From Oopsacas minuta (Eukaryota > Animalia > Porifera), in the NCBI GenBank assembly GCA_024704765.1, contig JAKMXF010000320.1, positions 62,001 through 126,000 on the forward strand: a stretch of DNA of 64,000 nucleotides, given 5' to 3'. The first letter of the stretch is position 1, and every line of letters begins with the position of its first letter. Shown here piece by piece: positions 1 through 49,254 of this stretch. The translations under genes were made by a program, and so were the position numbers. The notes below the pieces were generated by a model. It searched no databases. It was not told the origin of the DNA and worked only from the letters and a program-made list of their open reading frames with translations.

Positions 1-1904
1 GAGTTGTTTGTTCTGCCCTTGATACTGTTACCAATAAACAGGTTGCTATAAAGAAATTGCCTGACCCTTTCAGTCGATTGGCCTCCGCTAAGCGTGCTCT
101 TCGAGAGATTAATATCCTGACACATTTCGAGCATGAGAATATTATTTGTGCTCGCGATTTTTTACGACTAACTGGACGTGACATTTATATAAAACTTGAT
201 CTAATGCAGACAGACCTCCAGCAGGTAATCAATACAAACCAACTCACTGATGAACATATCAAGTATTTCTCCTATCAGATGCTGAAAGCACTTAAGTATA
301 TCCACTCTGGTAACATAGTACATAGAGACCTGAAACCATCGAACATTTTAGTTGACGAGAACTGTAATATCAAGATTGGAGACTTCTCGCTAGCTCGTGA
401 CGTAAAATCCCAGCGACCAGACTTTGTTTGTTCTCGAGCAGATAATACCCTCACAGAATACGTAGCTACTCGATGGTATCGAGCTCCTGAACTCATGATG
501 AATGTAGGTCCTCACACATGTGCTCTAGATATCTGGTCGCTGGGGTGTATCATGGCTGAGCTGATCAACGGCAAGACCCTCTTCCCAGGGACCTCATATC
601 TGAATGAACTTCAGCTTATTCTCAGTGTGACAGGCACTCCAAAGAAACCTCTTCTGGAGAGAATGCGACAAGATAAAGTCAGAGAGTATATTCAGTCTCT
701 GCCGGAGCAGAAACGCACGCGACTTTCTTCTCTCTTTCCTTCAGCTCCTGGTGAGTGTGTAAGTTTGGTAGACAAAATGCTCCTTCTAGACCCAGAAGAG
801 AGGTGTACAGCCGAAACAGCTCTAAAGCACAGATACTTACGTGTACATCACAATCCGCTTGTGGAAGCTGTATGTTTAAAACATTTCAATTTCTCCTTTG
901 AGAAAGACTTTACCTCTCCTGAGTTGATCAAACAAGCTGCCCTAGAAGAGATTAGAGGTTTCTACATGCGTAAGAACAAGAAAGGAAATATAAATGATAC
1001 TCTCAAGATTCTCACAGAAGTACTTAATCAGAGAGATTTTTCTACTTCGCAGCCTCCTCCTGACAGGCGATTTAAACCAAAGCGAGACAACTCATGTAAT
1101 CGAGTACTCTCTCCCAACCCTTCTACCCACATACCCTCACCCGAAACAAAGAGACACAAAATTGAACCACATCTTCGAAATGTGAATAATGCCTCCTCTC
1201 AGACATCTCTCTACCTGACTAATCAATCCAACTCCCCCTACTATCCTGATGACGTCATCCAAATGCCTCAAAAGAACACAAGAACGATTGGCACTCAGAC
1301 ATCTCCCCAGCTGGAGCGACGCTACGATCCAATATATGAATCTGCTCCATCTAATTCATATTCCATGTCACCTGCACCTAATTACCCTCCTTATACGCAA
1401 GAAGTATCCCACTTGAACTCTCCTTTCCTCGATCAAACATATCCTGAATTCTTCCCTCCTGTAGACTACTATGAAGAGGTTCCTAACCATGAGTGGATTG
1501 ACATTCCATACCAGCCTAGTTCTTGTAACCAAGGTTACGCTATTGGGTATGAGATATCTCCTTCTATCAACTCTTATATCCCTAGTAATAATAACTCTTC
1601 CTATTTTTTTGAGCCGAAGCTTCCTGACTTCCCTGTGCCTCCTCTTACTAACGTATCTTCTGAACACAGTTCTGACTGTGATCCCACCACTGGACAACCA
1701 GACATACTCTCTATGCCTCCTCCTACTCCGCCTCAATTCCAGATGGGACTACAACCTGTCCCTGTCCACATCCCTAAAGACACCTCAAACTCCCTTTTGA
1801 CTCATTGGCTTAACAGCGACCTTGCTTACCCACAAGATTTGCCAGATTTAGAGGATTGCTGTTATGACGTCATAAATGACTTATTCGCTGATATATTTCC
1901 ATAG
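1..1904 (+). CDS. MAPK7: Mitogen-activated protein kinase, ERK5/MAPK7-like; 5' end lies upstream of the window; no intron in the visible part
   Basis: Frame is open from base 3 (VVCSALDTVTNKQVAIKKLPDPF), so the TTG start at 57 in the ORF track is not the true start. Has VAIKK, HRDLKPSN, TEY activation motif (TLTEYVATRWYRAPE), a long Pro/Ser-rich tail and C-terminal SLLTHWL...DLPDLED resembling the ERK5 tail. Confidence 0.88.
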   Translation, partial: VVCSALDTVTNKQVAIKKLPDPFSRLASAKRALREINILTHFEHENIICARDFLRLTGRDIYIKLDLMQTDLQQVINTNQLTDEHIKYFSYQMLKALKYIHSGNIVHRDLKPSNILVDENCNIKIGDFSLARDVKSQRPDFVCSRADNTLTEYVATRWYRAPELMMNVGPHTCALDIWSLGCIMAELINGKTLFPGTSYLNELQLILSVTGTPKKPLLERMRQDKVREYIQSLPEQKRTRLSSLFPSAPGECVSLVDKMLLLDPEERCTAETALKHRYLRVHHNPLVEAVCLKHFNFSFEKDFTSPELIKQAALEEIRGFYMRKNKKGNINDTLKILTEVLNQRDFSTSQPPPDRRFKPKRDNSCNRVLSPNPSTHIPSPETKRHKIEPHLRNVNNASSQTSLYLTNQSNSPYYPDDVIQMPQKNTRTIGTQTSPQLERRYDPIYESAPSNSYSMSPAPNYPPYTQEVSHLNSPFLDQTYPEFFPPVDYYEEVPNHEWIDIPYQPSSCNQGYAIGYEISPSINSYIPSNNNSSYFFEPKLPDFPVPPLTNVSSEHSSDCDPTTGQPDILSMPPPTPPQFQMGLQPVPVHIPKDTSNSLLTHWLNSDLAYPQDLPDLEDCCYDVINDLFADIFP

Positions 1905-5661: not shown

Positions 5662-6079
5662 CAGACCTGCAGCTGTCCGGTGATTTTACGAACCAAACCA
5701 CCATTGAGTTATTCTAAACCGTCCGGACCGGTCCAAACCGCATTTTGAACATCTTGGGCCGGTCCGGGCGATAACCAGTCCAGACCGAAAGACCGGTCCA
5801 CCTATTATGATACTGATCTAGATGATAAATGATTAAGAAATTTTACATTGTAGAGTGGTTAATTGAATCCACTTGTGTATATCCATTTCTAAATTTAGGT
5901 AACATGTGTATGTGCTTGTAATAGGCATGTAGCAGTTCGGAAATTTCGGTGACCGGTCAAGGCCGAGACCGATGGGCGGTCCGGGTCGTTAGATCCAATT
6001 TTCGGACATACCTCACTGAAAAACGCGGACTGAACTGAAACCGGTCGGTCCGGTCCAGGGATGGACTGCTGCGTATCTG
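5662..6079. mobile_element. hAT-type MITE (418 bp) with GACCG/CCGGT subterminal arrays
   Basis: Imperfect TIR (left CAGACCTGCAGCTGTCC; right end reverse-complemented CAGATACGCAGCAGTCC); perfect 8-bp TSD CTATGAAT at 5654-5661 and 6080-6087. Confidence 0.85.
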
Positions 6080-6437
6080 CTATGAATGAACCAGTTGTAA
6101 TTCGTAATTAAGTATGATACGAATGATTAATAATAAGAAGTAACGATGGTATTCGAAGCTACAAATATCATTAGAAGCATAGATATCAAAATAGGTGGCT
6201 ATGTGATAGTCTAATGTGTAGGAATAATGCATTATGTTAGAAGGAGTTAAAATCTAGCCTAAAGCTAGGTTTTAACCTCTAAAAGAGGTGTTTTACCTAG
6301 CAAGCTAACTTGGTAAAAGACATAAAATACTAGATTTTGACACTTATCCCTAGGTTTATTAGGATAGACCTCCTTTTGTGTTTCTTCTAAGATTTCTCCA
6401 TTTTGGCAACATTAAACATATTGTAAAGTGACTGGTA

Positions 6438-6735
6438 AGGGTCCGGATGGATTACGGATTTGCTGTCTAACGGATTGCGAATCCATCAAATCCGTAATGT
6501 ACGGATTTGGAAAATTCTCCCATCCCAAACTCGGTAATTTATGATTTTTCACTCATTTGGGTCTAAAATGTGCATTCATATGCAAATTCATACAGAATTG
6601 TAAACATAAGGATTCTTTGAAATCTCTATGGATTTTGGAATCATCTATGGGTTATGGATTGGGCATTGAACGGAAATTCTGGGTGAGATGGATTATAGAC
6701 TAGATTTGATATGAATTTCCATCAATCCTGACCCT
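6438..6735. mobile_element. Probable degraded MITE with CGGATT/AATCC subterminal repeats
   Basis: Ends AGGGTCCGGAT / ATCCTGACCCT are imperfectly inverted; flanks share CTGGT; TSD length ambiguous. Confidence 0.4.
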
Positions 6736-6992
6736 CTGGTCGCACTCGCACCACATTCCCCTATTTCATCTGCCAAAGCTGCCCACGCAACTGGTTTCAC
6801 TTTTGAAACTAGTCTGGTTCCATTTCCTGAAAAGTAGGCTGGAAAAACAGTGATAACATCTCTTCTTTTCAAGAAATGGGACCAGGCTATAGAATGATCG
6901 TGAGTACCAAGTTAGAGGTGGTAGATCATTAAATGACAATCCAACGCCATGTACAATTTCACGAATTATATTCATCGCTAAATATTATAAAA

Positions 6993-7549
6993 CGAGCAGC
7001 TTCGCTAGTTCGCGCTGCGGGGCTTACGAACACTTTGCGTTCGCATGGTCTCGGAACTTAGTGCCTCGAGTTTGCCGAAGTATAAAATTGCAAAATTGGA
7101 TTAATAAATTAATATTTCAACAATTTGTTTACTTTATATTCATAAAAACAACAAGAATTTACATAAGAGAAACTTGTATATGCAAAATTCGGATTCAGCA
7201 TCCTTTGATTTATAGCCGTTAAGAGCAAGCCTCCACGTATATCTTAAGATTACCCCTATTTGTCTGTAGAGAGCAAGTATCTAAGTATATATCGACATTT
7301 CAACTATTGTTTACTTTAAATTCATAAAAACAACAATAAATTTACATGTGATTAATTCGAAAGTGTAAAAATCGGAATCAGCATACTCGATTACCCCAAT
7401 GTAATTGTGTACTTTTCCTATACCGTCAACAGAAGGATATGTTATTCTCTTTATTATATACGCAGATAATCTTCCTCTATCATGATAATACAGAGTGGAC
7501 AAACAAACAAACATCCAACAATAATTGGATTTTAATAATATATATATAG
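6993..7549 (-). mobile_element. Non-autonomous Helitron-like element, variant 3' end
   Basis: Minus-strand 5' end (TA)n-TTATTAAAATCCAATT-(TTTG)n, two internal GCTGAATCCGA-type modules, GC-rich hairpin end finishing GCTCG followed by T. Confidence 0.6.
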
Positions 7550-7700
7550 CTATTGAGAATAACAGACATAGGTTTCAAGATAAAAAACAGGAAAAATATC
7601 AGAAAAGAACGAAATACGACGACTGATTCTAAGGGTACCCGATTCGAACTAAAGTAATTCTTCATAAAACCAAAACGAAGATGCAAGTCATGCGTACTAA

Positions 7701-9344
7701 CTAAGAACACATTTTAGTGGCACACAAGCAAGAGGCTCCAACCTTTATATCAGCTAATACGCTTGCTTTCTGATACTTCTCATAGACAGATTGAGCTTCA
7801 TCCAACTTGTTCTGTGCTTTCAATGATTGATGGAGACCCAATAATGACCACATGTTATCCTTGTACTGAATCAAATCTTCTCGATACACGGCTTCAGCTT
7901 CTTGAACGTCTCCATGTTCTAGCAATAGTGCACCCAGCACGTGTCTTGAAGGTATCATCCAAGACCAAGGTTCACCATAAACTAAGCTTGTATCACGTTT
8001 GACAGCAAGACGGAGATGGTCAAATGCTTGTTGATAATTCCCTTTCCGATATTCAATTTCACCATTTAATACGGAATCTGCAACATCCAAAATACATTTA
8101 CCAGGAGTTTCAGGATTATACATATATGAATTCAGGATTCGCCTCTTTGCCAGTGTTTTATCCTTCAGGGATTCATAGAATAAATCACGTTCCACTTCAG
8201 CTTCTGCTACTTTACCTAACGCAGCGTATGCAACACCTCGAGCATATCGTGCCATAGCAATATTGCTAGGATACAATTCTTTGTTTTGTTCAATTGGCCG
8301 TTTCAGAATGTCTTCCCATTTACCAAACCGAATCAAAACTTCCCAAATAATAACTCTCGTTGGTTCCAAAAAGATTAATCCTAAAGGCATATCTCCTAGC
8401 ATAGCAGTGACTCCTTCTAAATTCGAGTATTCTTGTAATTCTTCTGCGAACTCTAAAGATTTCCCCAATTGTCCATTAAACATTGCAGCCCAAATAACAA
8501 AATGAAAGTTGTGCATTCTATACATTTTGTAAAAGTTGTTCTCCACTTTGCTAGTTAGCATGTATCTCTTATCAGCTAGAATTGCTAGTTCATTCACTTC
8601 AGTAGCTTCTTTGTAGTGTCCTACCCACATGTCGATATGACTAGCCATGTGAAGCAAGTGTCCATGATCCTTTATAGTCTCGCGCAAAGCGTCCGCACAT
8701 GGTAACGCTTTCTCAGGTGTAGCAGAGAGTTCCATTGTGTGAATGTAGAAATGACACAAACCTGGATGCTGTGGAGATTGCTTAAGGGCATTTTCAAGCA
8801 CTTTCACTAACTCTCCTGTCTCTGGGATTCCTTCCTTGTATTCAGGATACGGAGTCCATAACTTCCAAGGAGCTAAATTCATTAATGATTCTGCAAACAA
8901 GGCTGCAACTACCACATTATTCTCTCCGAATTTACTATACACACTACGCATTGCATTAGCATAATTCTTATTCAATGTGCCTAATGGTACAGAACCTACT
9001 GGGGAACAGAATCTAAGGACTTGTGCCTCGATTAGTCCTTTTTCCCAATCAGTCAAGGTAATTCTCTTTGCAAGAGAGGATGCTATCTCTGCTTCTTCAT
9101 ATCCTTCCCTATAATCCATGCCATCTGGATTATTGTAGTGGCCTGCATTACTATATGCAATTAGATAATGTGCCATAATACAGTCCTTATCAATAGTGAG
9201 GGCTTTCTTACAATCGAGTATAGTTTGATCATGATTGAAATTGAATAACTGGAGTAATGCATCGTTGATCAACTGCAAACATTCACTAGAAGAGCATGTT
9301 ACTTGTACTTTCTCCATAATTCCTTTTGAACATTGTTCTGCCAT
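7701..9344 (-). CDS. TPR-like alpha-helical protein of bacterial/fungal type, copy A (547 aa, intronless)
   Basis: Uninterrupted ORF; first ATG at 9344 (the track start at 9353 is GTG). TPR-like helices (AFDHLRLAVKRD, LGALLLEHGDVQEAEAVY); motifs HPGLCHFYIH, HGHLLHMASHID, YGEPWSW. 516 of 533 aligned residues identical to copy B. Confidence 0.85.
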   Translation of the reverse strand: MAEQCSKGIMEKVQVTCSSSECLQLINDALLQLFNFNHDQTILDCKKALTIDKDCIMAHYLIAYSNAGHYNNPDGMDYREGYEEAEIASSLAKRITLTDWEKGLIEAQVLRFCSPVGSVPLGTLNKNYANAMRSVYSKFGENNVVVAALFAESLMNLAPWKLWTPYPEYKEGIPETGELVKVLENALKQSPQHPGLCHFYIHTMELSATPEKALPCADALRETIKDHGHLLHMASHIDMWVGHYKEATEVNELAILADKRYMLTSKVENNFYKMYRMHNFHFVIWAAMFNGQLGKSLEFAEELQEYSNLEGVTAMLGDMPLGLIFLEPTRVIIWEVLIRFGKWEDILKRPIEQNKELYPSNIAMARYARGVAYAALGKVAEAEVERDLFYESLKDKTLAKRRILNSYMYNPETPGKCILDVADSVLNGEIEYRKGNYQQAFDHLRLAVKRDTSLVYGEPWSWMIPSRHVLGALLLEHGDVQEAEAVYREDLIQYKDNMWSLLGLHQSLKAQNKLDEAQSVYEKYQKASVLADIKVGASCLCATKMCS

Positions 9345-9726
9345 TTTGTTCACAATTTAGCTGCTGAGACTAAAATATCTACTCTATGTATACGATATGT
9401 TATGAATCAGCTTCTATTCTAATCACGTATTATTATTGTAGTATTGTTCTACTGTAATTAAGGGCTGTTAACTATATGTTTACCACGCTAAATTTTTGTA
9501 TACGAGTTCCCCGCCGGCTGCACATCACAAATCCCAAAAATATTACTGTGAATATTATGAATTTCAAATTTGTATCCACATTTTTCCGAAAGGACAATTG
9601 TACTTAACCAATTTTTCACCTTTCAAAGACGTCTCCAATTTGTAGACATTTAGCGATTACAGAACAAATCTTAACTAAATACTAAATGTGATTGAAACTA
9701 ATATGTAAACAAAATTAATAAAACTA

Positions 9727-10139
9727 CAGTGCAACCTCTATAAGTGAGGAGTGGGGATGGAGGATACTTTAGAGATAATTATGCCTCACGCCATTGATAT
9801 TTACCTCCATAAGTGGTGAACTATACGGAAAAATTTCGTGAATAATCAATTTTTGTGCTAAATTTAGCAATAAATATGTATTTATAGCTTTGATGATTGA
9901 AATCTTTGGGTTTCTTTGAAGAAAATTTCGCACAAATTTGTATATTCAACCAACAACCTTAGGGCATTTATAATAATAATAAAATATCATTGAAAAAATA
10001 GTCATTGGAGGATGTGGCCTTACATATTGACTCAAAATCTCTGTTTAAAGGGCATTTCCATTTGAAATTATAAATGGCGAATGGGGGGTTATCAGGAGAT
10101 TCGCCGTCCCGACGTCTTCCACTTACAGAGGTTCTACTG
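9727..10139. mobile_element. pogo/Tigger-type MITE (413 bp)
   Basis: TIR CAGTGCAACCTCTATAAGT / ACTTACAGAGGTTCTACTG with TA on both sides; a second partial copy lies at about 48960-49254. Confidence 0.85.
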
Positions 10140-10474
10140 TATTAGTATATTCTCTTATATGGATATAGTTGTAGCGCGTATGATTATGAAGTTACAGCTG
10201 TTATTAATTTGAAATAACAAATTGGAAGATAGAAAAGAGTAATACATGTATTTAGAGTCATTTTAGTATTTATAATATATTGATTATATTATTAGTGACT
10301 AGTGGAATGTACATACAATGAAATTGAATCTCTTTGATTGCCAATTAGGTATAGTGTATGATTACATTATAATAAAATATGGTTGTCTCTTACGCTAAAA
10401 ATGGTCCCAGACCAATTTCTTCGTGACAGTCCCAATAGAAACATATATCACCTTGTTCGTTGTGAAGGAAGTAT

Positions 10475-10630
10475 TAGTGGAAACTGCATAAACCGACGCC
10501 TGTATAATCCGACAGTGTTTCTGATCTAAATAGCTTCTGCCAATACAAATTCACCTGCATAATCCGACTATTTGTTAAACCGACAAAAATTTTCATGCCC
10601 CAACGAGAGTCGGTTTTGCCGGTCCCACTG
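10475..10630. mobile_element. Short pogo/Tc1-type MITE
   Basis: Ends AGTGGAAACTGCATAAACCGAC / GTCGGTTTTGCCGGTCCCACTG-TA; homologous over its length to 30625-30775. Confidence 0.7.
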
Positions 10631-11167
10631 TACGTAATTATAATCAAATATAACTTGCCTGATTATAAATCGAATGTTGCGAATCCGAATTTCACACTTT
10701 TGAATGTAAATTATTGTTGTTTTAATTAATAAAAGTTAACAAATAAATGAAGTCTCAAATATATGCTCTCAACGGTCTATTAGCAAATCGTATTTTACAA
10801 GAATTTCCTTGCTAGTTTCCTATTATGCACGCTAATCACGATACAAGTATGCACTCTCTGTCTTGAAAAAAGTTGCAATAGGCGGTTTCCAAAGTATAGT
10901 TTATAGTAGAAGGTCAACATGGGTGATCAAGAATGCTGAATCTGAATGTCGCATTTTCAAGTTATCATCTGTAAAATTAACTAGAAACTATATAAATAGA
11001 GCATATGGATCAAACTTTCATTGGAACCGGGTGGTCTCTGAATTCCTCCCATCCCACCGACAAAGTTAGGCACTAATCCAAGGTAGAGTTCCAACCCTCA
11101 CTCCTAATCGTGTAGTAAATACACACGTAGGGACTTGAGTGTACTTCCGCACTCGACTTTCATTAGA

Positions 11168-11253
11168 CAGTAGAACTCGGATAAGACGTACCCCCTGGGG
11201 AAACAAAAATTAGTTCGTCATAACCGAATATAGGTCTTATCCGAGTTCTACTG
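11168..11253. mobile_element. 86-bp pogo-type MITE
   Basis: Perfect 20-bp TIR CAGTAGAACTCGGATAAGAC / GTCTTATCCGAGTTCTACTG; TA on the right, GA on the left. A degraded relative lies near 50518-50668. Confidence 0.8.
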
Positions 11254-13674
11254 TATGATTATAAATAGTCACCCGACCCGTGAGTATTAGAAAATAATGA
11301 AAATGCGTTCAGCCTAGGCCAAACGCAGTATTTCAGGACAAACGCATTTGGCCTAAGCTAAAAACACGTTTGGTCTGGAACATGTAGAATACTATGCAAC
11401 AACAAATTTACATATGACAAACCTGAAAAGCAATATTCGGATTCAGCGTACTTTGTTACCCCAGGCATTGAGAGCAAGTCTCTACCAAGAAAATAGGTAG
11501 CTTGTGTTTACATATCCATTGTACATCTCATGAGTTTTGGGAAAATATTATCAATCCATGGCGCTTATGGTAAGGGTGTGCTGGAATTTAGGTCAGAAAA
11601 ATTAACGCTCGGAAAATATTTTACCTATTGGGTTTGGAATATTCATTTTGCTTTCAATCTAGTGATTCGGAAACTTGTATCCAACTATCCGTAAAACTTA
11701 AATAATCACTGCCAAATAAGAGGTATGGAAAATTACTGAACATTTCTAAAGGAAAAGATGACTATAATATAATTCTATCACTTCGAATATTCAATATCTT
11801 GTTATTTTGGATACATATAGTACTTTAAGAATTCATAGAGATATTTAATATCTTTGAATTCAATTACGAGGGGCATGTATCTATGAACTTACTTGTTCTG
11901 ATCTATCCTTTTCCAGGATTAGTGGAGCGGGAGAATTTTAAGAATTCTGCCGCCTCCACTAAGACATGAACAAATATTTGCAAGAAATTCTATTGTGTCG
12001 GCCTTATTGATTCCAAGGATGTATTTACTATTTGTGACCTTTGTAGTTTGTATAGGAAACTAATGATCCAAAAAACATTTGCCTGACGCTCGAGTGATTT
12101 CCCGAGTGTCAGGCAGAAAAAGTAGTAGATACATTCTTGGACCGCTTTACTCATGGTCCAAAATCTATTTACCACACTAAAGTACGATTCCACAACATAC
12201 AGCTTACGAATCGCCTCCTGTAACAATAAGTCACACCTCCTTGTAGGAATCATCTAACCTCGACCAGAATACCATGGCAAAAGTAATGAGTAAATATATA
12301 GTAAAACATTGGATGAAATAATAAAGTAGCAAGTAAACCGATGGGAAAATAATATCCGCACGCCTTATTTTACTCAGAACGTATGGCAGAGTTCTGGATG
12401 ATTTGCGATACTTGTCCATATCCGCCCATAGTCATCTTCTCAGAAATACTACCAACAATCCGTCCTGGATTAAAAATCAATGACGGATGTAATCCGCTAT
12501 CTACCTCCCGTTATTTTTACTGTGCCGACTATACTTTAGTATAGTGGCCCAGTATTGATTAACGATTAAATCACTCAAAATATCGGCGCGGTTCCATAGG
12601 CCAATTTGTTCATAGAATCCATTTCATGAAAATATTAAACATAGTTACATATCTATTCCATTGGCATTTTAATAATATTACAAATTGGAACTAAAGTTGG
12701 ATTTAGGTTCACTTTTAGAACCCGACCGACCCGAAACCGAGTTTTTCCAATTTAAAGGCCTTCCCTCTCTCACGGAACGGAACTAAGTCATTATTTTAGG
12801 AAAACACATTTGTCGATTACTAAGCATTTGTTATGACATTTCACATCAATGATAATCAATGTCAAATTTGTATCCTTTGTGCGAAAATAAATTATTCCGC
12901 CAAGAAACCTTCCCTCTCTAATTTTCGATCTCTTATTCTTGGCTGGAGGGTGTTAGTTTTCCAGCCGAAAGGTGGTCCTGAGAATATTCAGATTTATTCA
13001 GGGGTTCTACGTACTATATATATTATATAAAAAGCAACAAATTTAACAAATTTATTACCACTACTCTGAAAAGTAAACACAAATGCTTAACGACCGTCGT
13101 TCTACGATATTCTGTGATTTACAAGGCCAAAAGAGTAGCAAACAATAATTTTGAAGTTTGTTCAAGTAGAACGTTGTCCGTTCCGTGAAATATTAAATAG
13201 GGAATCCCATCCAAAATTACAAACCAGTTTGCAATTGAACTCCGACCCCGATCCTGATCCGAAAAAGCTGAACCAAATCCAGGGGCGGTCCCAGGATTTA
13301 GCATACCCGGGCAAGGCCGGGGCTAAGATGGTTAAAGATGAAGCAAAATATTATCATACCAGTATAATAGGAAGTGATGGAATATCGGTTAATTAGGAAA
13401 GTTACACATTTGCTTGGAACCAAAGTGTCCCAATTAAGAGAAGTCAACTGATATCATAATGAGATACAGTTATGGAGTAGATAAAAATAAGAATTAATCT
13501 CAGCTAAGAGAGTACAAACTTCATGTGACTAAAACATTACAGACACTCTTATCTTAGCTCCCCAGTTCCAGCCCTATATTCTAAATATTGTATTTTCCTG
13601 AATCTATTTTATGCAGGAGAATACTCGCCACTTATTCAGGGAAATAATGTTATTTATAAAACTGTAGAGTGTAG

Positions 13675-15336
13675 ATGGCTGAAACAAAATTTATAGGAAA
13701 TATTCAGAAAGAATTAACTGGAAAGTACGATGAAGTAACTTGCTCTTCTAGTGAATGTTTGCAGTTGATCAACGATGCATTACTCCAGTTATTCAATTTC
13801 AATCATGATCAAACTATACTCGATTGTAAGAAAGCCCTCACTATTGATAAGGACTGTATTATGGCACATTATCTAATTGCATATAGTAATGCAGGCCACT
13901 ACAATAATCTAGATGGCATGGATTATAGGGAAGGATATGAAGAAGCAGAGATAGCATCCTCTCTTGCAAAGAGAATTACCTTGACTGATTGGGAAAAAGG
14001 ACTAATCGAGGCACAAGTCCATAGATTCTGTTCCCCAGTAGGTTCTGTACCATTAGGCACATTGAATAAGAATTATGCTAATGCAATGCGTAGTGTGTAT
14101 AGTAAATTCGGAGAGAATAATGTGGTAGTTGCAGCCTTGTTTGCAGAGTCATTAATGAATTTAGCTCCTTGGAAGTTATGGACTCCGTATCCTGAATACA
14201 AGGAAGGAATCCCAGAGACAGGAGAGTTAGTGAAGGTACTTGAAAATGCCCTTAAGCAATCTCCACAGCATCCAGGTTTGTGTCATTTCTACATTCACAC
14301 AATGGAACTCTCTGCTACACCTGAGAAAGCGTTACCATGTGCGGACGCTTTGCGCGAGACTATAAAGGATCATGGACACTTGCTTCACATGGCTAGCCAT
14401 ATCGACATGTGGGTAGGACACTACAAAGAAGCTACTGAAGTGAATGAACTAGCAATTCTAGCTGATAAGAGATACATGCTAACTAGCAAAGTGGAGAACA
14501 ACTTTTACAAAATGTATAGAATGCACAACTTTCATTTTATTGTATGGGCTGCAATGTTTAATGGACAATTGGGGAAATCTTTAGAGTTCGCAGAAGAATT
14601 ACAAGAATATTCGAATTTAGAAGGAGTCACTGCTATGCTAGGAAATATTCCATTTGGTATGACTTATTCAGAACCAACGAGAGTTATTATTTGGGAAGTT
14701 TTGATTCGGTTTGGTAAATGGGAAGACATTCTGAAACGGCCAATTGAACAAAACAAAGAATTGTATCCTAGCAATATTGCTATGGCACGATATGCTCGAG
14801 GTGTTGCATACGCTGCGTTAGGTAAAGTAGCAGAAGCTGAAGTGGAACGTGATTTATTCTATGAATCCCTGAAGAATAAAACACTGGCAAAGAGGCGAAT
14901 CATGAATTCATATATGTATAATCCTGAAACTCCTGGTAAATGTATTTTGGATGTTGCAGATTCCGTATTAAATGGTGAAATTGAATATCGGAAAGGGAAT
15001 TATCAACAAGCATTTGACCATCTCCGTCTTGCTGTCAAACGTGATACAAGCTTAGTTTATGGTGAACCTTGGTCCTGGCTGATGCCTACAAGGCACGTGC
15101 TGGGTGCACTATTGCTAGAACATGGAGACGTTCAAGAAGCTGAAGCCGTGTATCGAGATGATTTGATTCAGTACAAGGATAACATGTGGTCATTATTGGG
15201 TCTCCATCAATCATTGAAAGCACAGAACAAGTTGGATGAAGCTCAATCTGTCTATGAGAAGTATCAGAAAGCAAGCGTATTAGCTGATATAAAGGTTGGA
15301 GCCTCTTGCTTGTGTGCCACTAAAATGTGTTCTTAG
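13675..15336 (+). CDS. TPR-like alpha-helical protein of bacterial/fungal type, copy B (553 aa, intronless)
   Basis: Uninterrupted ATG-started ORF; inverted duplicate of 7701-9344 with a different 20-aa N-terminus. Confidence 0.87.
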   Translation: MAETKFIGNIQKELTGKYDEVTCSSSECLQLINDALLQLFNFNHDQTILDCKKALTIDKDCIMAHYLIAYSNAGHYNNLDGMDYREGYEEAEIASSLAKRITLTDWEKGLIEAQVHRFCSPVGSVPLGTLNKNYANAMRSVYSKFGENNVVVAALFAESLMNLAPWKLWTPYPEYKEGIPETGELVKVLENALKQSPQHPGLCHFYIHTMELSATPEKALPCADALRETIKDHGHLLHMASHIDMWVGHYKEATEVNELAILADKRYMLTSKVENNFYKMYRMHNFHFIVWAAMFNGQLGKSLEFAEELQEYSNLEGVTAMLGNIPFGMTYSEPTRVIIWEVLIRFGKWEDILKRPIEQNKELYPSNIAMARYARGVAYAALGKVAEAEVERDLFYESLKNKTLAKRRIMNSYMYNPETPGKCILDVADSVLNGEIEYRKGNYQQAFDHLRLAVKRDTSLVYGEPWSWLMPTRHVLGALLLEHGDVQEAEAVYRDDLIQYKDNMWSLLGLHQSLKAQNKLDEAQSVYEKYQKASVLADIKVGASCLCATKMCS

Positions 15337-15781
15337 TTCGTTCACATGGTTTCATCACCCTTTTTGTTTGAATATTTACTTTTGGTTGTTCAAATTGGCT
15401 TCTAATCCATTTGTTTTCTTAAGTTTGCTCGGGTTTTATGTTGATTTCATAATTTGTGTGCTTATTTCTTATTTACTTTTGTTCAATAGTTTTGATACCA
15501 TTGGGTCCTATAGAGCTTGTTGCCCAAATCCTAATTGCATAGGTACTGTTCTATCCGTATTTGCTTCCCGTCTCCCATGCGAAATTTAGCCCTCCGATCA
15601 GCTTGAAAATTAGTATTATAGATTTATACCTCAGATATGGATTTTCTAGTGCGAAATTTCACACTTTTGGTGATAAATCATATTTTCACATAATTTTTGC
15701 TTTTATCTCAAAGTTGTGCTAGAAATTTTCCTAATTCATGTCCATTTTCAATAAATTACTCAACTTAGATATTCACACATT

Positions 15782-18700
15782 CAGGGCCGGATTAGCAGCC
15801 TATTTGGCCTGGAGCTGAATAATTTTGATGGGCCTAAGTAGGCTCATCAAAATTATTAGGCCGCCTACCCCTACCTTACAATTCTATAAATAACAAAACA
15901 ACTTTAATGTATTTGGTAGCTAAAATATTTTAAATATTTTATAGTGTTACTTGACGTGCTTTTCGACTTGCGAAATCTCTAATCGTAGACTGCACATCGA
16001 TTTCTTGCAAAAGTTCATTTTCTATACACAGAAGAGAAAGTGCATTCAAACGATTCTGACCCATAGTGAACCGCAGTTCGTTCTTTGTCCTTTTCAATGT
16101 TGAAAAAGATCATTCCCCGCAGCAGTTAGTGACCATTAAAGATAAATATATTCGTAGTGTGGTTAACATATTCGGAAAGGTTGTGTCTAGTGCATTTCTC
16201 TTAATCAACTTGAACATTTGGAATTCTCTAATCTGCTTTGTCTTCAAACTTAGAAGAATCTGAAGAAATATAACTGTTCCAGAAAGCAGAAAACTGTACT
16301 ATTTCATCTACAAAGCCAGGTTCATTGTCATCTGAGTATATATTAATTAAATCATTAGCTTTGTCACGCATCTGATCAGAGACTAAAGAATTCAATTCTG
16401 ATAAAATCCAAACCTGTCTCTGATAACACGATATGCTGCCTGTCTTTGATTCAAAGCTGCCACTAGTTTATCAATAATTGGAATCAAATTTGTTACCATG
16501 AATTAATTTGATGGAGAAAGTTCAGCATCTTCAGTATCACCATAGTCAAATTTCTTATTTCGCTTACGCTTTCTTCGATGTTCTTTGGAGTACGTGGCAC
16601 AGTGATAAAGAACCTTACTTCGATGCTCAAATTCCATAAACTGAGAACGTAGTGAATGTACAAATTCTTTCAATGATTCTAACAACTTTGTGGCTGTATT
16701 CAAATCTAGACTTGCATCTTGAAGACATTTGCTAGTTTTATTAAACCTAATCAATATTGTAGACCAAATTTGTAACATTATTCCTGTTTCCAAACGATTC
16801 ATTATTGCAGCAAGTCCCTTTGCCTCCAAACGTGTCACAGGTTTCTCAGATTTATCTTCGCACATTAGTACAAGTACTTCTTCAATATTTGTATAACCTT
16901 TTAGTAAGGCATCTACCGCATTATGGTGTGCAGACCATCATGTGTCTGAAAGTCTTTTCAAAGTTGGTATTCCAAACTTCTTGAAGACATCAAGAAGGAG
17001 ATTCCATCTATGAGTAGAGGCAGAGAAAAACACATACAACTTTTGTACAAAATAGAAAATGAAACTGCAGCTGGACAACATTCTACAGCACTTTGTCCGA
17101 TAAGATTGAGAGAATGTGCACAACATGGAATGAATTCAGCCAACTTATTCTTTTCACGAATCAAAGCCTGCATGCCGTTATACTTTCCGCTCATGTTTGA
17201 TGCGTTGTCATATGTTTGACCTCGACAATCTTTAATGGAAACATTATTTTCTTCCAAAAAATTGAGAAGTACTTTTGCTAAATGTTCGCCAGTATGTTCA
17301 TATATTGGAATGAATCTAATAAATCGTTCTACTGGACCTCTTGGTAATACATAGCGAATTATTAGTGTTAGTTGGTCAGTGTGCGAAATGTCCGGTGTGG
17401 AGTCCACACTAATAGAATAGTACTTGGCAGTTTTGATTTCTAATATAATCTGCCTAAGAACCTGTTGTCCAATTACTTGGATAAATTAATCGCATATTGT
17501 TGATGATAAGTATGATATGTGGCCTCGCCCTTTGTTTGCATGTTTCTGAATGTGTTCTGCAAGGAATGTACCATACTCAGCTAATAACTCAAGACAACCC
17601 AAATAATTACCATTATGCACAGATCCTACTATCTCATCACTCCCACGAAATGAAAGACCTCTTGAAGAAAGCATCTTAATCAAACTTAAAATTCTCTGGA
17701 GAACTTGATGCCAATACTTATTTTTAGACTCATATTGCTCAATTAGACTTTCATCTATATGTCCACCAGTCATTCTTCGCAAAATAAGTGTTTCAATAGA
17801 TATTTTATGCAACTGACTGTCTTCATGGCGAAGTAAATCTCTGGCTGCATGCTTCCAATCTGAATAACAATTTGTTGCTAACTGTGAAGTTTCGTCTGGT
17901 GTTGAAAATAGCATGCAGATTGCGCAATACAACTTCCCAGATTCTACCGAATAGCAAAGCCAGTCACGTTGAAATTTCTCACCGTTTAACTGGTCACGAT
18001 AAAAGAGTGACTTGGTACATCGCCGCGCAAAGGTTTCACTAGGAAATGTCCTCTCGGAGGCACTAAAGTCGCTATCCATGTGCTGACAACCAGTAAACCC
18101 CTTTTGACAAAAAATACTCGCGTAAACCATCAGACATTTTCCATTTTCCTACATCACTAGAAAATGATTCTTCTTGAAGGTAATTAAAGTTCAAATTTTC
18201 AGTTTCACAAAGCATATTGCAATCAGATGGAACAGATAGAGATTCTGCTAATCCAAGGTAAAGAGGTTCATTATTCACGATTTCAATGCAATGTTTACCA
18301 TCTCCAGTTACATTAGCAATTGTGGATACTACTGCATTTTTATCAGGGGTTTTCGTAGAGCAAAACTCTGTCATTTTTCTGGTACATTCTAAAATTTTCT
18401 GTAGTTTTCTTTCTTCTTCAGACTTTGCCTTTGCTTGCCCCAACCACTGCGATATTTTTTCATCTTTCTTTTTCTTGATATATCAAAAATGAAATAGTAA
18501 GGAATGCTTCAAGCTGGGCAAACACAAATATAATCGAAAGCTGCATATAATGCAATGAAGTAAAAAGTAAGTTATAAATACAAGGTATGCTTGGGCTTAG
18601 CGGATATTATTAAATTGCTCTCTGTAATAATCTTAGAAGATATAATTTAATATAAGAAAACCTAAAGTAATGATTACTGGCAAAATTTAATTCACAATGA

Positions 18701-21921: not shown

Positions 21922-22643
21922 GCACCTGACATTTGAAATATTTCTAATGTGTACATTTTCACACCTTTTGACACCTCTGTTATTTAGCCCAACCAGAATG
22001 TAGGGTTTTACATTAGGCATAAATGCATAAAATTAGTTCTGGTGAAGCGTATGTATTAAATTAGCACTGTAATTATATTGATTGTAGACTGTGATTCTAT
22101 TGGTCAATACATTCTATTAAATATATTTGGACGGTAACATATGTACACATTTATCATATGATTAATCATATTTTCACACCATTTGGTGAACTTTTCAAAT
22201 TATCCTAGAGATTAGCTTCCATTTGTTCAATAGGCGTAAACAGGGATGTATAATTCGATTTTGACATTTTTAATTTCTATCAAGATTTGTAAAATTCAAA
22301 ATTATCTTTCTTTGATAAAATGGATATTTTGTAGAATAATATACCGTATATGTAGTTTCAATAATCCACTAGAATTAATTTGGGAAAATTTAAGTCGGCA
22401 CAGATGGTGGTTTGGTTTTAACAACTAATGATTTTGTTTATTGGGTAGAACACATCACATGACCCAGAGGCCCGAGCTTCACTACCATGTGTCGGCTGGA
22501 CATCTTTTTTGATGACCCAGGGGCCTAGACTCAACTAAACCTTGAGTATATTTAGCCAATTAATTCTAATTCGAATAGCTCAAAGAGTCTCGGCTACTAA
22601 GAAGCACATCAATGGTCATCATTTTATAGCTGATTTGGATGGA

Positions 22644-25600
22644 ATGGCTTCTGGATTTCAGTATACTTGTTCTCAGTTCATCTCCGCTCTCCAGTTTCCA
22701 TCTCTGAATTTGCAAGTTCAGGAAGTAGCTCACCATTTGAAAGAAACTAACTCTAACCTTGACTCTACTTCCTCCTCCTCCTCCTCCTCCTCACAAACCC
22801 TCAAATTGTTCTTGTCTGGCCTTGAGTGTGAAGAAGTAGGTGCTGTTGAATCTAGCTGTTGGGGGTTGAGACGGCTATGCGAGACTAACAACGTTACAGC
22901 TTCAGAACTGGTTGCACTCCTGCTCAGCAGGCTCACCTCATGTTTATATCCTCTGCCTGTAATATCCCTTATGGGAGATTTGTTATTGAAATCAGACATA
23001 TCTAATAATTACAATATACACACCAACCAACATCCACTAGCAGTAGCTTTCTCTTCCTGCTCTGATGCTGTACTATCTACTTTATTCTCTCTCTTCAGTC
23101 ATTCAGCTTCAAAAGCTCTGTATGTGCTATGGCCCTGTCTTGCTCAGATACTTAATGATCCTCAGCTTGCTGATCACAAATTCAACATAGTTTCTGCTAT
23201 GTTAGAGATAAATTCAATTCACGGAATTCCTGAGAATGTATCTTCCTCAATCACTCGTCTGCTGTTGCTATCTGTTATTTATGAATCTGAATTTTCTATC
23301 AAGATACAGCTTATTCACTCTCTGCTTGACTTCTCTCTTTCTCAACCTATCTTCATTCCTCTCTCTGAGATTAGTACTCTCTGCTACAACACACTGCTAA
23401 CCTCTACTTCCTGTTTTCTTATCTCCCCACTCCTCCACAAGCTGAAGAGATTGCTGCTGCTATACTCACATCTCCTAACCGATTACTATACGATAGTTTG
23501 GCTTAGTCTCTCTCTCTTACGTACAAATTTAACTCAGTTCTCTTCCCTGCTAGCAGACATCACTGAACTTGTATTAGATAAATGTAACAATGATTCTGTA
23601 TCTGATATAACGCGGGATTCTCTCTCTCTGCTGATATTCTCTATTCTAGGAGCTCAGCTGAATCTTGAGCGGCTGAGACCTGACACTAGTTCACGCTACT
23701 CACTACTTCTACACACTCTACTGAATACAGGAAAGAGAGTTAAGAGATATGTCAGATACCCTGACGATTCATTCAAGATTCCTGTACCAGTATTTTCAGA
23801 ATCAACTATTTATCACGGAGAACTCAACGTATTCGCCTCTCTCTCATCTCACTTGCTAGTATGTTCTAAATCTGTAATACTTAAATGGTGTGAATACACC
23901 TTACAAGCTCTATCCCAGTCAGAATATACGAACTCTCCTCTATCTATTTGCTGCATAGTTTCCTCTCTCTTGGTTGAATTCACTTCTTATCCTCCTGATC
24001 AGTTGACAGAGCACCAACTCATTATTCGTATCCTAATACAAATAGTTTCTCAGTTGGTACGAACTGCTACAAACTTTGCTCCACCCCTCATCGCCTTATT
24101 GTTATTAACCATGGATAGAAGCTCTCATCCAGAAGATGTAGCACAAACACTCCACACTATATCAACTCTCTCCACACATCCTGCCTGTGTTATAATTGTA
24201 CTCCGCTCCCTGCTCTCTCTAACAGACACATCTTCTCTTCTACCAGCTGTCCTGAGAGCTCTCATCTCTCTTTGGAAACTACACGACCCTATATATCCCC
24301 ACATCCAACAACTCATACAAATACAACACCTCTCTACACCTGAATGGAAGCTTGCTACGTCTTTCTCTGTGCTGGACATTTGCTCTACTCGTCCTGCTGT
24401 ACATGGAGAAGAGATGATACCACAAGTACAGAGTCTGATAAGGTCTAGAGAATGTAGCTTATTCGTTAGCATAGGACTATCTGCTCTAACTAGTCTGGTA
24501 TCAGCTGATACGATAGATTATACAGACTCACTAGACCTACTAGCTGTAGCAGTAGGTACTCAGTCTCCTACTCTATGGGAGTCTAGTGTAGCAGAGAGAG
24601 CTACCCAACTGCTCCGTCTCTCCCACAAGCTACTAGATGTGTCAGTAGCTAGAGATCAGGAGCTGTTGTCACGCTGTGTACAACAGCTGATAATACTATT
24701 GACACACACTAACCAACAGGTTAGAGCTACAGCAGTATCAGCTCTATCTGATTTTACTCCTAGGGACCTGATTATGATAGAACCGTTCGCTCTTAATCTC
24801 CGTAGAGAGCTTTCTATACCTGAATGTCTGGACCTACCGTCTGACCGCAGGGCTAGGTGTCAGTGTGGCTCTCTCTTCAGCTTTATACTACATATTGAAT
24901 ACTCATGTACTGAAGAGTGTACCTCTCTGAGAGAGCTGTTGTCTTGCTGGATGAGAGAAGAACTGAACTCTATTTCTACTGTATACCCGAGAGAGCACAA
25001 ACAGGAGGTAGAGAGAGGAGAGGCTGTTATAAGAAGTACCAGTAAAGTTTTGACAGAATGTCTCCCTAAGCTTAAACATATGACAGACATACCTGACAGC
25101 TTAAATGTGTCTCCTTACCAAGCTGCTGCTCTTCTGTTCACGGGTATAGAGCTATGGGTATATAGTGAGTCTCCACATAAACTAATGCAGCAATATCTCC
25201 ATCTATTATCTCGCTGTCTCAGCTACTCAATTGATACTTCTACATCATGCATCTCACAAATTAATGAATTCCTTGTGTTTATTAACGGTATTCAGTTATT
25301 CATGCGAGATGCTCTCTCTGTGTACCGTCCCCCCTCCTCCCCTTTAGAGTCTCTGTTCGGCCTACTGGATAAGATTAAGAGTGAAGATAATCCTCAGGGT
25401 AGTATGTGGCTTATGGTTGGTCTAGCTCTTAACGTGAGTGAGCTGTACTCAACTGGGATACAGACAGCAATACAATCTCTTGTTGATTCGTTATTGCTCG
25501 CTTCTTCTCACCTTCTCACCTCTACAGACTCCCACGAAACATTTGATGAACATGAAACTATATATTCATCGCGAAATTTAACACCCTTAAGTGGAGTATC

Positions 25601-27749
25601 CTTTCTAACCCTAGGAGTTCTAGGCGGAACTATATGTGCTCACTTGAATCAGAAGTTTAGCACAAATTATATTAGTTCAATAATCAAGATATGGCAAGCC
25701 TCGCGACACTCTCCTCAACTTGATGTTATGTATGCTCTAACTATATATTCCGTTATAAATGCGAATACTTCCTATCTCCTTCAGGAAGGACCTGCAGCTA
25801 GGAAGCTAACAGAGATTAGCAAGAGATGTATCCAACAGATACAAGACGGTATGTACCCCAGCCAGTATGCCTATCTCCTGCTGACTGATGACGTAACTCT
25901 TATCAGGAACAAACAACAGGAATCAATGAAAGCACTGACTTGTGAACAACAGCTGGAGAGTTCAGCTCTCACCTGCTCTGTCCTTACATGCAGACTATAC
26001 TCAATGTGTGAAATATCTTTACAGGACTGTGATGAAGTTATCTCTACCTTCCTCAAACTCTCAAGAGATCATCCTTACTCTTTCCCTCACACAGCAGTTG
26101 GAATGCTACTCTATCACACAGCTTGTTACGGACATGTAGCTTCACAACTACTCATAAGTAAAACTCTATCTCAGTTACGCTCTATCCTACAGCAATCTCG
26201 CAATGATGATGTCAGTTCCTTGTTGCTTGGAATTCTTGCTATTTTTGGTGCTTTTCAACCCATAATTGGTCCCACACCTCCTCCCACACCAGCTCACTAC
26301 TCTGTGCTGCAACAGGGCGTCAAGAGTTTTCTAGATTATGCCTCCCCTCGTGTAGATAAGCAGAACAAGTTCTCTCATATGTTAACACTACTCGGCTTCA
26401 TTCACTCTCAGTACTCACACTATTCTGATACTATTCGAACTCCTAGTTCTTCCGAATTTCTCTCTGACAACATTCTGCTCTCCCCTCTCTTCAAATTTTT
26501 GGAGGAGGCTCAACAGTCTGGTGCAATCTCACAGAACTCACAACAAGATAAGTTTGTAACTATTTTTGAAGTTATGTCTGAAACTAGCAAACCTTTACCT
26601 AATTATCCATGGTCTAATCTCGTTACATCTTTCCAGCGTAACTCAGAAAATGATTCTATTCACGCTTCACTCCTTAAATTATTATTCAAACTACAATCCC
26701 AGGCATCTGAGCAAGAGCTTGAGAGGATAACATTCCTTATTCACCATTGGTTGCTAGATCCTGCTCTTGATAGAAACAAAATTACAAATTTGTGTAGGCA
26801 AATATTGGCAGAGAATATTAATAATATTTTCAATTTATGTAAGGAAGAATATCTTTTCAATAATCTGCTTACTTTTCTGTGTGGAGATAAGGACTTAACA
26901 GTCCATGTACTGATAGGGCTGGTTAAATTAAAGGTAGAAAAGGAGACGACAGTTGTGCAAAAACACAAACAGACATTAGTATTCTCAGCTCTTAAAATCC
27001 TATTAAAAGACCCGATTACTGATCAGCTTTGTTGTGATAGAGCGATACCCTTACTTGCCAAATGTATGTCACATTTGTCACCAGGAGACCTGGATAAGTT
27101 GATCCCTAAAGAAGGAGAATTATTTATTTTAATCAGATCTCACCTCTTCAACAATACACTAGATTATCATTGGCTCAAACCTTGTATTATATATCTTATA
27201 CGTCTACCATCTCTTGTTTCTAAAGTAGAATCAAATCATTTTAATCTTATTTTATCCCAAATATCTCTGATACGGGCTTTGCCTAATAAATGCGTATCTG
27301 AAGTGTGTTTGGAATTGTTTAACCTTATCAGGCCAGAGCTTCAGATGAATTCTACTAGTTCTATTGAAGATATATCCAAACTTATGTTCAATTCTATGAT
27401 CATCCTATCCTTAGTAAGTCCTGAGATATCACGTATGTCTGCTGCGCTTCTCACCACTCAATTACACCCTGATACATTCTTGCTCTCAGAAATGACACAT
27501 TTCCTTTTAAGGATATGCTCATCCAGCTATAAGCAGAAAATATATGTTCCCATATTGAAGAAACTTTATGAATGTTTGTTGCTATTCTTTCAACTGCTCG
27601 ATACCAAAAATAGCCTAACATCAAACACATCTATACTCCTGTTTAGCTTACTAGCTCACCTCCGTCAGATAGACGATATAGTTAGTGGTAGGCCATGGGC
27701 TGCTATGGGTCAGGCTATCTTTACACATAGTAAACTTTTCTTAAAATAA
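22644..27749 (+). CDS. FOCAD: Focadhesin (FOCAD/RST1 family ARM-repeat protein), 1701 aa, single exon
   Basis: 5.1-kb open frame, first ATG at 22644. Segments YNIHTNQHPLAVAF, LRALISLWKLHDPIYPHIQQ and VLDICSTRPAVHGEEMI match recalled focadhesin segments (YTIRNHPHPLITV, LRLLTSLWEKQDRVYPELQ, IRDICKQRPYQHGADML). Confidence 0.85.
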   Translation: MASGFQYTCSQFISALQFPSLNLQVQEVAHHLKETNSNLDSTSSSSSSSSQTLKLFLSGLECEEVGAVESSCWGLRRLCETNNVTASELVALLLSRLTSCLYPLPVISLMGDLLLKSDISNNYNIHTNQHPLAVAFSSCSDAVLSTLFSLFSHSASKALYVLWPCLAQILNDPQLADHKFNIVSAMLEINSIHGIPENVSSSITRLLLLSVIYESEFSIKIQLIHSLLDFSLSQPIFIPLSEISTLCYNTLLTSTSCFLISPLLHKLKRLLLLYSHLLTDYYTIVWLSLSLLRTNLTQFSSLLADITELVLDKCNNDSVSDITRDSLSLLIFSILGAQLNLERLRPDTSSRYSLLLHTLLNTGKRVKRYVRYPDDSFKIPVPVFSESTIYHGELNVFASLSSHLLVCSKSVILKWCEYTLQALSQSEYTNSPLSICCIVSSLLVEFTSYPPDQLTEHQLIIRILIQIVSQLVRTATNFAPPLIALLLLTMDRSSHPEDVAQTLHTISTLSTHPACVIIVLRSLLSLTDTSSLLPAVLRALISLWKLHDPIYPHIQQLIQIQHLSTPEWKLATSFSVLDICSTRPAVHGEEMIPQVQSLIRSRECSLFVSIGLSALTSLVSADTIDYTDSLDLLAVAVGTQSPTLWESSVAERATQLLRLSHKLLDVSVARDQELLSRCVQQLIILLTHTNQQVRATAVSALSDFTPRDLIMIEPFALNLRRELSIPECLDLPSDRRARCQCGSLFSFILHIEYSCTEECTSLRELLSCWMREELNSISTVYPREHKQEVERGEAVIRSTSKVLTECLPKLKHMTDIPDSLNVSPYQAAALLFTGIELWVYSESPHKLMQQYLHLLSRCLSYSIDTSTSCISQINEFLVFINGIQLFMRDALSVYRPPSSPLESLFGLLDKIKSEDNPQGSMWLMVGLALNVSELYSTGIQTAIQSLVDSLLLASSHLLTSTDSHETFDEHETIYSSRNLTPLSGVSFLTLGVLGGTICAHLNQKFSTNYISSIIKIWQASRHSPQLDVMYALTIYSVINANTSYLLQEGPAARKLTEISKRCIQQIQDGMYPSQYAYLLLTDDVTLIRNKQQESMKALTCEQQLESSALTCSVLTCRLYSMCEISLQDCDEVISTFLKLSRDHPYSFPHTAVGMLLYHTACYGHVASQLLISKTLSQLRSILQQSRNDDVSSLLLGILAIFGAFQPIIGPTPPPTPAHYSVLQQGVKSFLDYASPRVDKQNKFSHMLTLLGFIHSQYSHYSDTIRTPSSSEFLSDNILLSPLFKFLEEAQQSGAISQNSQQDKFVTIFEVMSETSKPLPNYPWSNLVTSFQRNSENDSIHASLLKLLFKLQSQASEQELERITFLIHHWLLDPALDRNKITNLCRQILAENINNIFNLCKEEYLFNNLLTFLCGDKDLTVHVLIGLVKLKVEKETTVVQKHKQTLVFSALKILLKDPITDQLCCDRAIPLLAKCMSHLSPGDLDKLIPKEGELFILIRSHLFNNTLDYHWLKPCIIYLIRLPSLVSKVESNHFNLILSQISLIRALPNKCVSEVCLELFNLIRPELQMNSTSSIEDISKLMFNSMIILSLVSPEISRMSAALLTTQLHPDTFLLSEMTHFLLRICSSSYKQKIYVPILKKLYECLLLFFQLLDTKNSLTSNTSILLFSLLAHLRQIDDIVSGRPWAAMGQAIFTHSKLFLK

Positions 27750-48910: not shown

Positions 48911-48959
48911 TAATCAATACTCTAGGTCAGTATTTCTCAACCTTTGCGGCTTAGGATAA

Positions 48960-49254
48960 AATTTCTTGAATATTTAATTTAGATTTGGAAAAATAGACGT
49001 ATTTATCGCTATATTGAAATAAATCTTTGGGTTTCTAAGTAGAAAATTTCTTATAATTCTGTAATTTCAACCAACAATCTTAAGGCATATTAAAATAATC
49101 AAATATTGAAAAAATAATGGTTGGAGGAAGTGGCTATACGTATTGACTAAATAATCTCTGGTTAAAGAACATTTGAATTTGAAATTATAAATGGAAATGG
49201 GAGTTATCCGGAGATTCGCCGGCCTGACCTACCCCGCTTATAGAGGTTCTACTG
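48960..49254. mobile_element. Right-hand part of the 9727-10139 MITE family
   Basis: Homologous to about 9850-10139, ending CTTATAGAGGTTCTACTG-TA; start approximate. Confidence 0.75.

Follow-up and report, generated by a model that had tools for sequence, protein, structure and literature searches.

The window analysed in this study is a stretch of 64,000 nucleotides from the glass sponge Oopsacas minuta (assembly GCA_024704765.1, contig JAKMXF010000320.1, positions 62,001-126,000 of the forward strand; the contig is C320 in locus names, and positions below are window coordinates). It harbors two intronless genes, called copy A and copy B, which are arranged head to head and encode TPR-like proteins. 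The genes form inverted arms that are 98% complementary, are limited to the coding body and differ mainly in three short patches. A and B very probably represent an ancient pair that was homogenized by gene conversion. The parts of the pair are the following.

7701..9344, minus strand: copy A, intronless coding sequence for a TPR-like protein of ~547 residues, short N-terminus form, kinase-adjacent (open reading frame and TPR_12)
7689..9304, no strand: inverted-repeat arm 1, the homogenized tract in A (repeat search, 1,616 nt, 98%)
7944..7964, minus strand: patch 3 in A, S-W-M-I-P-S-R (codon comparison)
8367..8393, minus strand: patch 2 in A, DMPLGLIFL, resembling the paralog C (codon comparison)
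8493..8498, minus strand: patch 1 in A, GTT ATT, V-I (codon comparison)
9345..13674, no strand: spacer of 4.3 kb with both 5' ends, both promoters and pieces of dispersed repeats (no long open reading frame)
13675..15336, plus strand: copy B, intronless coding sequence for a TPR-like protein of 553 residues, long N-terminus form, focadhesin-adjacent (open reading frame, Pfam, AlphaFold2 model)
13733..15348, no strand: inverted-repeat arm 2, the homogenized tract in B (repeat search, 1,616 nt, 98%)
14539..14544, plus strand: patch 1 in B, ATT GTA, I-V (codons as in a gene of another sample)
14644..14670, plus strand: patch 2 in B, NIPFGMTYS (unique in the genome)
15073..15093, plus strand: patch 3 in B, S-W-L-M-P-T-R, within an invariant EPWxWxMPxRH motif (codon comparison, family alignment)

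Codon by codon, A and B differ at 31 of 1,599 aligned nucleotides, without indels, and at 17 of 533 amino acids. Twelve of the 17 replacements are concentrated in HFVIW/HFIVW, GDMPLGLIFLE/GNIPFGMTYSE and WMIPSR/WLMPTR (A/B). In patch 2, 12 of 27 nucleotides differ (8367-8393 against 14644-14670), the synonymous changes CCT/CCA and GGA/GGT included, and patch 3 is flanked by the synonymous changes TCT/TCC and AGA/AGG. All counts, patches and synonymous changes listed in the original prediction were reproduced here. A 27-nt window with 12 differences was not obtained in any of 200,000 permutations, the permutation maximum being seven. The open reading frame of copy A extends over 7701-9353 on the minus strand from a GTG at 9353; the in-frame ATG at 9344 is the likely start codon.

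A and B are unalignable upstream of codon ~20 and beyond ~12-15 nt after the stop codon. The abrupt start of similarity was thus predicted correctly, whereas its proposed end at the stop codon was not, as the similarity runs a little past it. Likewise, flanks and N-termini were both said to be unrelated. This holds for the flanks, where blastn found no similarity between A and B in 2 kb of either side, but not for the N-termini, which both begin with MAE and match two N-terminus forms of relatives.

The published O. minuta assembly comprises 365 scaffolds, ~61 Mb and 36% G+C, and is a PacBio and Illumina hybrid that was polished with Pilon (PMC10280926). The hybrid origin and the polishing would speak for an assembly or polishing artefact. 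Logan contigs of three public runs from one sample, which is probably the source of the assembly, were aligned to 12700-16300. Contigs with zero mismatches span the junction from the unique 5' flank into the arm (12700-13770) and that from the arm into the 3' flank (15309-15810), and another one (14484-14734) carries patches 1 and 2 of B in phase. Run contigs also contain A-type letters at 14148, 14235, 14238, 14902, 15075-15093 and 15159, and C-type letters at 14514-14544. The unitig common to A and B has ~2x the depth of the unique flank of B in two runs. As both versions and both arm/flank junctions occur in contigs of single runs, collapse or a polishing artefact is argued against. An artefact of this kind, or a young inverted duplicate in whose three patches adaptive point mutations arose in a burst, is taken together very improbable. 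The latter is superficially suggested by the identity of 98% and the inverted arrangement, but the similarity ends at codon ~20 and ~15 nt past the stop, the flanks are unrelated, and the layout is common to a genome with much more diverged orthologs, as described below.

Four paralogs are present in the genome: A, B, C (C320:54255-55862, 86% identical to B) and D (contig C303, 78%). One of them is labeled LOD99_6698 (Oopsacas minuta) by NCBI. C is located 7.7-6.1 kb before the start of the window and ~14 kb from the pair, between RlaP and MatE. The genes that anchor the synteny, and the gene orders found here and in other assemblies, are these.

57..1904, plus strand: 3' part of a MAPK-like protein kinase gene (Pfam Pkinase, E=2.5e-52), anchor on the 3' side of A
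22542..27749, plus strand: focadhesin/DUF3730 gene (Pfam DUF3730), anchor on the 3' side of B
C320: RlaP(+) - C(+) - MatE(-) - kinase(+) - A(-) - B(+) - focadhesin(+)
ERZ25071281, ERZ25069837 and ERZ26869290: PKC - TPR(+) - kinase(-) - MatE - RlaP
ERZ25766962, one contig: kinase - P0010(-) ... HBD ... P0008(+) - DUF3730/focadhesin - MAS20
ERZ25072740: TPR(-) - 3.2 kb - P0009(+) - kinase(-), the TPR pair lying at L100:1140-2741(-) and 6001-7647(+)

The flanking genes are orthologous. The kinases are 74-83% identical, the value being 82% for a 694-aa kinase of related assemblies that faces the TPR gene in convergent orientation, and focadhesin shares 59% identity over 1,730 aa with the gene that follows P0008 in ERZ25766962. 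The TPR orthologs themselves are ~75% identical between genomes. As O. minuta and ERZ25766962 have the layout kinase-TPR(-)-TPR(+)-focadhesin in common, the pair predates the split of these two genomes, and on the evidence of gene order A and B are shown to be an ancient head-to-head pair. Remnants of the PKC or HBD genes, which lie upstream of the orthologs elsewhere, were not found in the spacer; the PKC and HBD orthologs of this genome are on other contigs.

Despite this age, the pairs are 96-98% identical at the DNA level within each genome, with 65 differences in 1,644 nucleotides for P0008/P0010 and 72 in 1,599 for P0009 and its partner, next to the 31 of A/B. In the tree built outside residues 301-345, every pair groups by species (support 100/100), and grouping by genomic position is rejected by the approximately unbiased (AU) test (p~6e-5, difference in log-likelihood ~410). 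As in a conversion tract, the ends of the similarity are abrupt and the flanks unrelated. The paralog C provides further evidence. Counted from VTCSSS, C is near-identical to A and B at codons 101-260, 321-380 and 401-533, but 20-40% different at codons 1-80, 261-300 and 381-400, and it is identical to A in stretches of up to 240 nt. In a Sawyer-type permutation, the longest concordant runs of A-C and B-C covered 31 and 24 polymorphic sites and were matched in 0 of 20,000 permutations (p<5e-5), while C-D gave p=0.007. Conversion among A, B and C is well supported by these mosaic patterns. Intrachromosomal conversion between the inverted coding bodies, together with conversion involving C, holds the bodies at 98%, while the N-terminal ~20 codons and all flanks escape homogenization and stay unrelated.

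Contigs of a fourth run (X5), from another organism that is ~5-6% diverged, were A-like and C-like over 13732-15301. The 5' end is A-like and reads Q-T-S-K-G-I-W-D-K-V, as does the N-terminus of A. This organism would be a useful close outgroup for the dating of conversion.

Outside the patches, A and B differ by only 0.019 at synonymous (dS) and 0.004 at nonsynonymous (dN) sites. In contrast, the 18 patch codons differ at proportions of 0.63 (pS) and 0.30 (pN). Synonymous divergence is therefore non-uniform along the gene, as had been anticipated. The saturated synonymous sites indicate that the patches are old sequence and not recent adaptive point mutations, which would not predict such saturation in a young duplicate. 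By this saturation, the patches are shown to be old sequence that homogenization did not overwrite. In this respect, the proposal of an old duplicate pair kept alike by conversion is strongly supported, given the common layout, the grouping by species, the unrelated flanks and the saturated patches.

Many codons specific to B agree with D or with genes from other samples; codons 158, 187 and 188 do so in their synonymous state, and the patch 1 codons of B, ATT GTA, are found exactly in P0003 of another sample. The long N-terminus of B contains a 5-residue insert that otherwise occurs only in P0003-P0006 and lies outside the tract; the short form is present in A, C, D and outgroups. A search for an ectopic donor of B's patch 2, by pattern with up to 3 mismatches in the 61-Mb genome, found B alone. 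In the other samples, the A-type and B-type states did not sort cleanly into the two lineages, as the signals are mixed.

The only Pfam signal in the encoded protein is that of C-terminal TPR repeats (TPR_12, 37.2 bits against a cutoff of 30.1). The first 360 residues are covered by no Pfam model, and NCBIfam gave no match above threshold. An AlphaFold2 model of B, calculated from an alignment of 59 sequences, is an all-helical solenoid of 27 helices (mean confidence score pLDDT 90.6). TPR solenoids were on top of both structure searches: Foldseek against the PDB returned generic TPR solenoids only, with a TM-score by query of at most 0.39, and the VIA structure search returned generic TPR superhelices with Z 12-16 over 200-340 residues. 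The score of TPR_12 above the gathering threshold and the solenoid fold place the protein among the TPR proteins. In search of a solved relative, PDB sequences were compared by phmmer and with a profile, which yielded consensus or designed TPRs and CHIP only, with E>0.005. Matches in the ESM Atlas were clusters of 'TPR repeat protein' only, from bacteria, archaea and Ascomycota. The family is large, with more than 2,000 matches, and is present in bacteria, archaea, fungi and animals.

Across the family, H204, Y206, H208, E211, H235, H238, H242, W246, H284, W291, G328, E464-P465-W466, W468, P471, R473, H474 and the C-terminal C545/C547 are invariant. In B, residues 204-242, 284-291, 464-474 and 545-547 are encoded at 14284-14400, 14524-14547, 15064-15096 and 15307-15315. 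The cluster contains six His together with Glu, Trp and Arg; a Cys-x-Cys follows at the C-terminus. This composition suggests a metal or small-ligand site, and the TPR-like proteins look like an undescribed metal- or ligand-binding family. TPR-solenoid receptors and scaffolds such as APC/C Cut9/Cdc16, TTC7, LGN and Rap/PlcR/AimR have a similar all-helical TPR superhelix. However, identity to these proteins is 7-14%, no family-specific motif is held in common and the His/Glu/Trp/Arg/Cys set is the family's own; membership is not claimed.

Among 102 nearest neighbors of 80 bacterial loci, no Pfam family occurred more than three times. The best matches in bacterial genomes are 35-42% identical, whereas homologs with 50-77% identity have eukaryotic genes as contig neighbors (PKC, MAPK-like kinase, focadhesin, FLYWCH/MULE). 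A recent horizontal transfer from bacteria is consequently not supported; an ancient one could still have taken place. In ENA ERZ26695902 (L007, a 4-Mb contig of a more distant, eukaryote-like genome), two copies with 55% identity lie in tandem at 1878-3494 and 8001-9611, ~4.5 kb apart, which indicates that local duplication is common for the TPR-like gene.

Reversing the view from the homogenized parts to the spared ones, the patches adjoin the invariant H284, W291, G328, W468, P471, R473 and H474. With a probability of roughly 0.58, we favor an ancient converted pair in which the patches are kept by selection as two variants. Conversion tracts that overwrite the patches would be removed by selection, at least at patch 2. 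Patch 2 would be part of a paralog-specific segment, residues ~280-341, that also resists homogenization in the pairs of related species, and it would lie beside invariant residues of the probable ligand or metal site. A and B might in this way represent two functional variants of one putative binding groove.

Evidence comes from patch 2, whose limits were set from A/B alone and then applied to three other pairs. In these, patch 2 contains 15 of the 205 nucleotide differences against a background of 2.4% (p=0.00017), and 7 of the 88 amino-acid differences against 3.2% (p=0.022); one pair contributes most of this enrichment. Of the 72 differences in the pair of ERZ25072740, 36 fall in residues 301-340, including positions 324, 327 and 329-331. 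Each of the three head-to-head pairs consists of one Phe331 and one Tyr331 copy. In addition, residues 338-341 read GPWH in non-kinase copies and VxLE in kinase-adjacent copies of two samples (ERZ25072740, ERZ25766962). The kinase-adjacent VxLE copies (L100, L011, L101) are without W340, which is nearly invariant in the family. Finally, blocks with 25 differences from C in 60 nucleotides are fully homogenized between A and B, so divergence alone is no barrier to conversion. Taken together, it is slightly favored that the patches, at least patch 2, persist by selection against overwriting tracts.

It is also conceivable, although unlikely, that conversion among A, B and C left the patches behind without any selective protection. 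Patch 2 would then result from an offset of tract ends, with C-like sequence from codon 324 onward in A but only from codon 333 onward in B, while patches 1 and 3 would be small leftovers or mismatch-dense spots restored by heteroduplex repair. In agreement with this, A's patch 2 shows 0 synonymous and 3 nonsynonymous differences to C and continues directly into a long run of sequence shared without difference by A, B and C, and B's patch 2 extends an A/B-specific block of residues 280-322. At codons 158, 187 and 188, A agrees with C and B with D and type I, which suggests a recent A-C exchange that did not reach B. The lack of recurrence of patches 1 and 3 in other pairs points in the same direction. 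However, an offset without selection does not account for the divergence peak that pairs from other genomes independently show at patch 2 (p=0.00017), for the homogenization of equally divergent blocks elsewhere between A and B, or for the Phe/Tyr331 dimorphism retained in all three head-to-head pairs. The 3 nonsynonymous and 0 synonymous differences between A and C fall within 9 codons amid near-identical sequence, which also speaks against it. For patch 2 taken by itself, selection appears the somewhat better explanation, a neutral offset is rather unlikely, and the remainder falls to relaxed constraint on B.

The last of these could go further. B might be redundant or in decay, with nothing but conversion from A and C to preserve its reading frame and with the patches as unconstrained relics that confer no second specificity. 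At several positions conserved in the family, B indeed has a residue that few or no relatives have: S332 is found in none of the others among 59 sequences, L469 in 2 of 57, and D495 is rare. Furthermore, the listed public runs include none recorded as RNA. Decay of B is nevertheless improbable. Its unconverted N-terminus is intact and of a form conserved with P0003-P0006, the 11 scattered A-B differences have dN/dS ~0.22, and orthologous second copies are intact in at least two other genomes.

Several of these observations, and some others, weigh against selection as the keeper of the patches. The C-like patch 2 of A and the contiguous block of B mean that a 27-nt offset of tract ends could create patch 2 without selection, and the rare residues of B could equally reflect relaxed constraint. 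Patches 1 and 3 did not recur as divergence peaks in the other pairs. The tree of the island groups by position only weakly, with the non-kinase copies of two samples joined at 81/77, and its AU tests against species grouping gave p=0.050 and 0.15 for groups named post hoc. In the patches, the Nei-Gojobori (NG86) estimate of dN/dS is ~0.27 with dS saturated, which is no signal of positive selection. Covariation between patches, calculated as mutual information with average product correction over 201 homologs, was not prominent, the best pair ranking ~1,500th of 150,000 in an underpowered alignment (effective number of sequences ~120). Finally, the run contigs are not independent of the assembly and probably come from its own sample. 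In summary, selection for two specificities at putative pocket-lining residues, as originally proposed, is plausible in view of the recurrence of patch 2, but it is weakened by patches 1 and 3, by the low dN/dS and by the alternative of a mosaic with C.

The 5' ends of the pair hint at a further process. By the 3' neighbor, A is the positional ortholog of kinase-adjacent genes and B that of focadhesin-adjacent ones. However, B has the long N-terminus and M329/Y331, which elsewhere are found on kinase-adjacent copies, and A has the L329-I330-F331 that in ERZ25072740 belongs to the partner away from the kinase. If a crossover took place between the arms at a point 3' of codon ~472, the 4.3-kb spacer would be turned around and each 5' portion would change its position. 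Such a flip, exchanging promoters and N-termini between the positions, would explain why B has the long N-terminus and M329/Y331 at the focadhesin position. It is a tentative idea, drawn from few characters. More doubtful still is a glass-sponge module of two variants, in which selection would keep Phe331/LIF and Tyr331/MxY grooves in every genome, with flips that swap promoters.

In the spacer, many different ends of run contigs fall at 13280 and 13311 within 12822-13311, with joints that skip 126-176 nt, and a piece at 9830-10142 is 77% identical to a second copy at 48958-49257. Both pieces look like remnants of small mobile elements. About 0.4 kb downstream of B, at 15725-16300, contig depth is in the thousands although the sequence occurs once in the window; it is probably a high-copy dispersed repeat of the genome.

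The pair had been regarded as a candidate for an undescribed system. This view is not retained, since interlocus conversion with residual peaks of divergence is known, for instance from L/M opsins. In the catarrhine L/M opsin genes, the introns are homogenized by conversion, whereas the exons responsible for spectral tuning are kept distinct by selection (Hiwatashi et al. 2011, PMC3213168). There, too, linked paralogs undergo interlocus conversion, homogenized parts group by species, spared parts point to an older duplication, and the residual divergence lies in a short segment thought to set specificity. Unlike the opsins, A and B are intronless and inverted head to head, the spared parts measure 6-27 nt within the coding sequence, and the genealogy of the island is borderline (AU p=0.05). 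Arm-to-arm conversion was reportedly described by Rozen and colleagues in 2003 for sex-chromosome palindromes. Adjacent inverted paralogs that are converted were also reviewed for the Caenorhabditis hsp16 modules and hsp70-7/8 (PMC3966223). Both cases resemble the sponge pair in that intrachromosomal conversion preserves the near-identity of inverted repeats separated by a few kb on one chromosome and that a crossover between arms can invert the spacer. They differ in that the A/B repeat consists of the coding body only, that 5' ends and promoters are distinct, and that a third paralog in direct orientation is involved. Models of the RHD/RHCE type, in which conversion is opposed by selection, are said to go back to Innan in 2003 and to Teshima and Innan in 2004. 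They predict sharp peaks of divergence at selected sites in otherwise homogenized duplicates, and their key test sets divergence against polymorphism along the gene, while the run data used here come from one sample and a low-coverage relative.

The A/B pattern is thus a clean example of a known evolutionary process and not a new genetic system. It provides a compact natural case of conversion against divergence, in an ancient inverted pair with a datable layout. In at least three related genomes, the same gene is homogenized except for one segment, and this replication across species is unusually clear. This makes the pair well suited to the question of how short segments that determine specificity outlast concerted evolution. 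For the widespread TPR-like family, which is without a solved structure, residues ~280-341 and the loop 464-474 would be the likely functional determinants.

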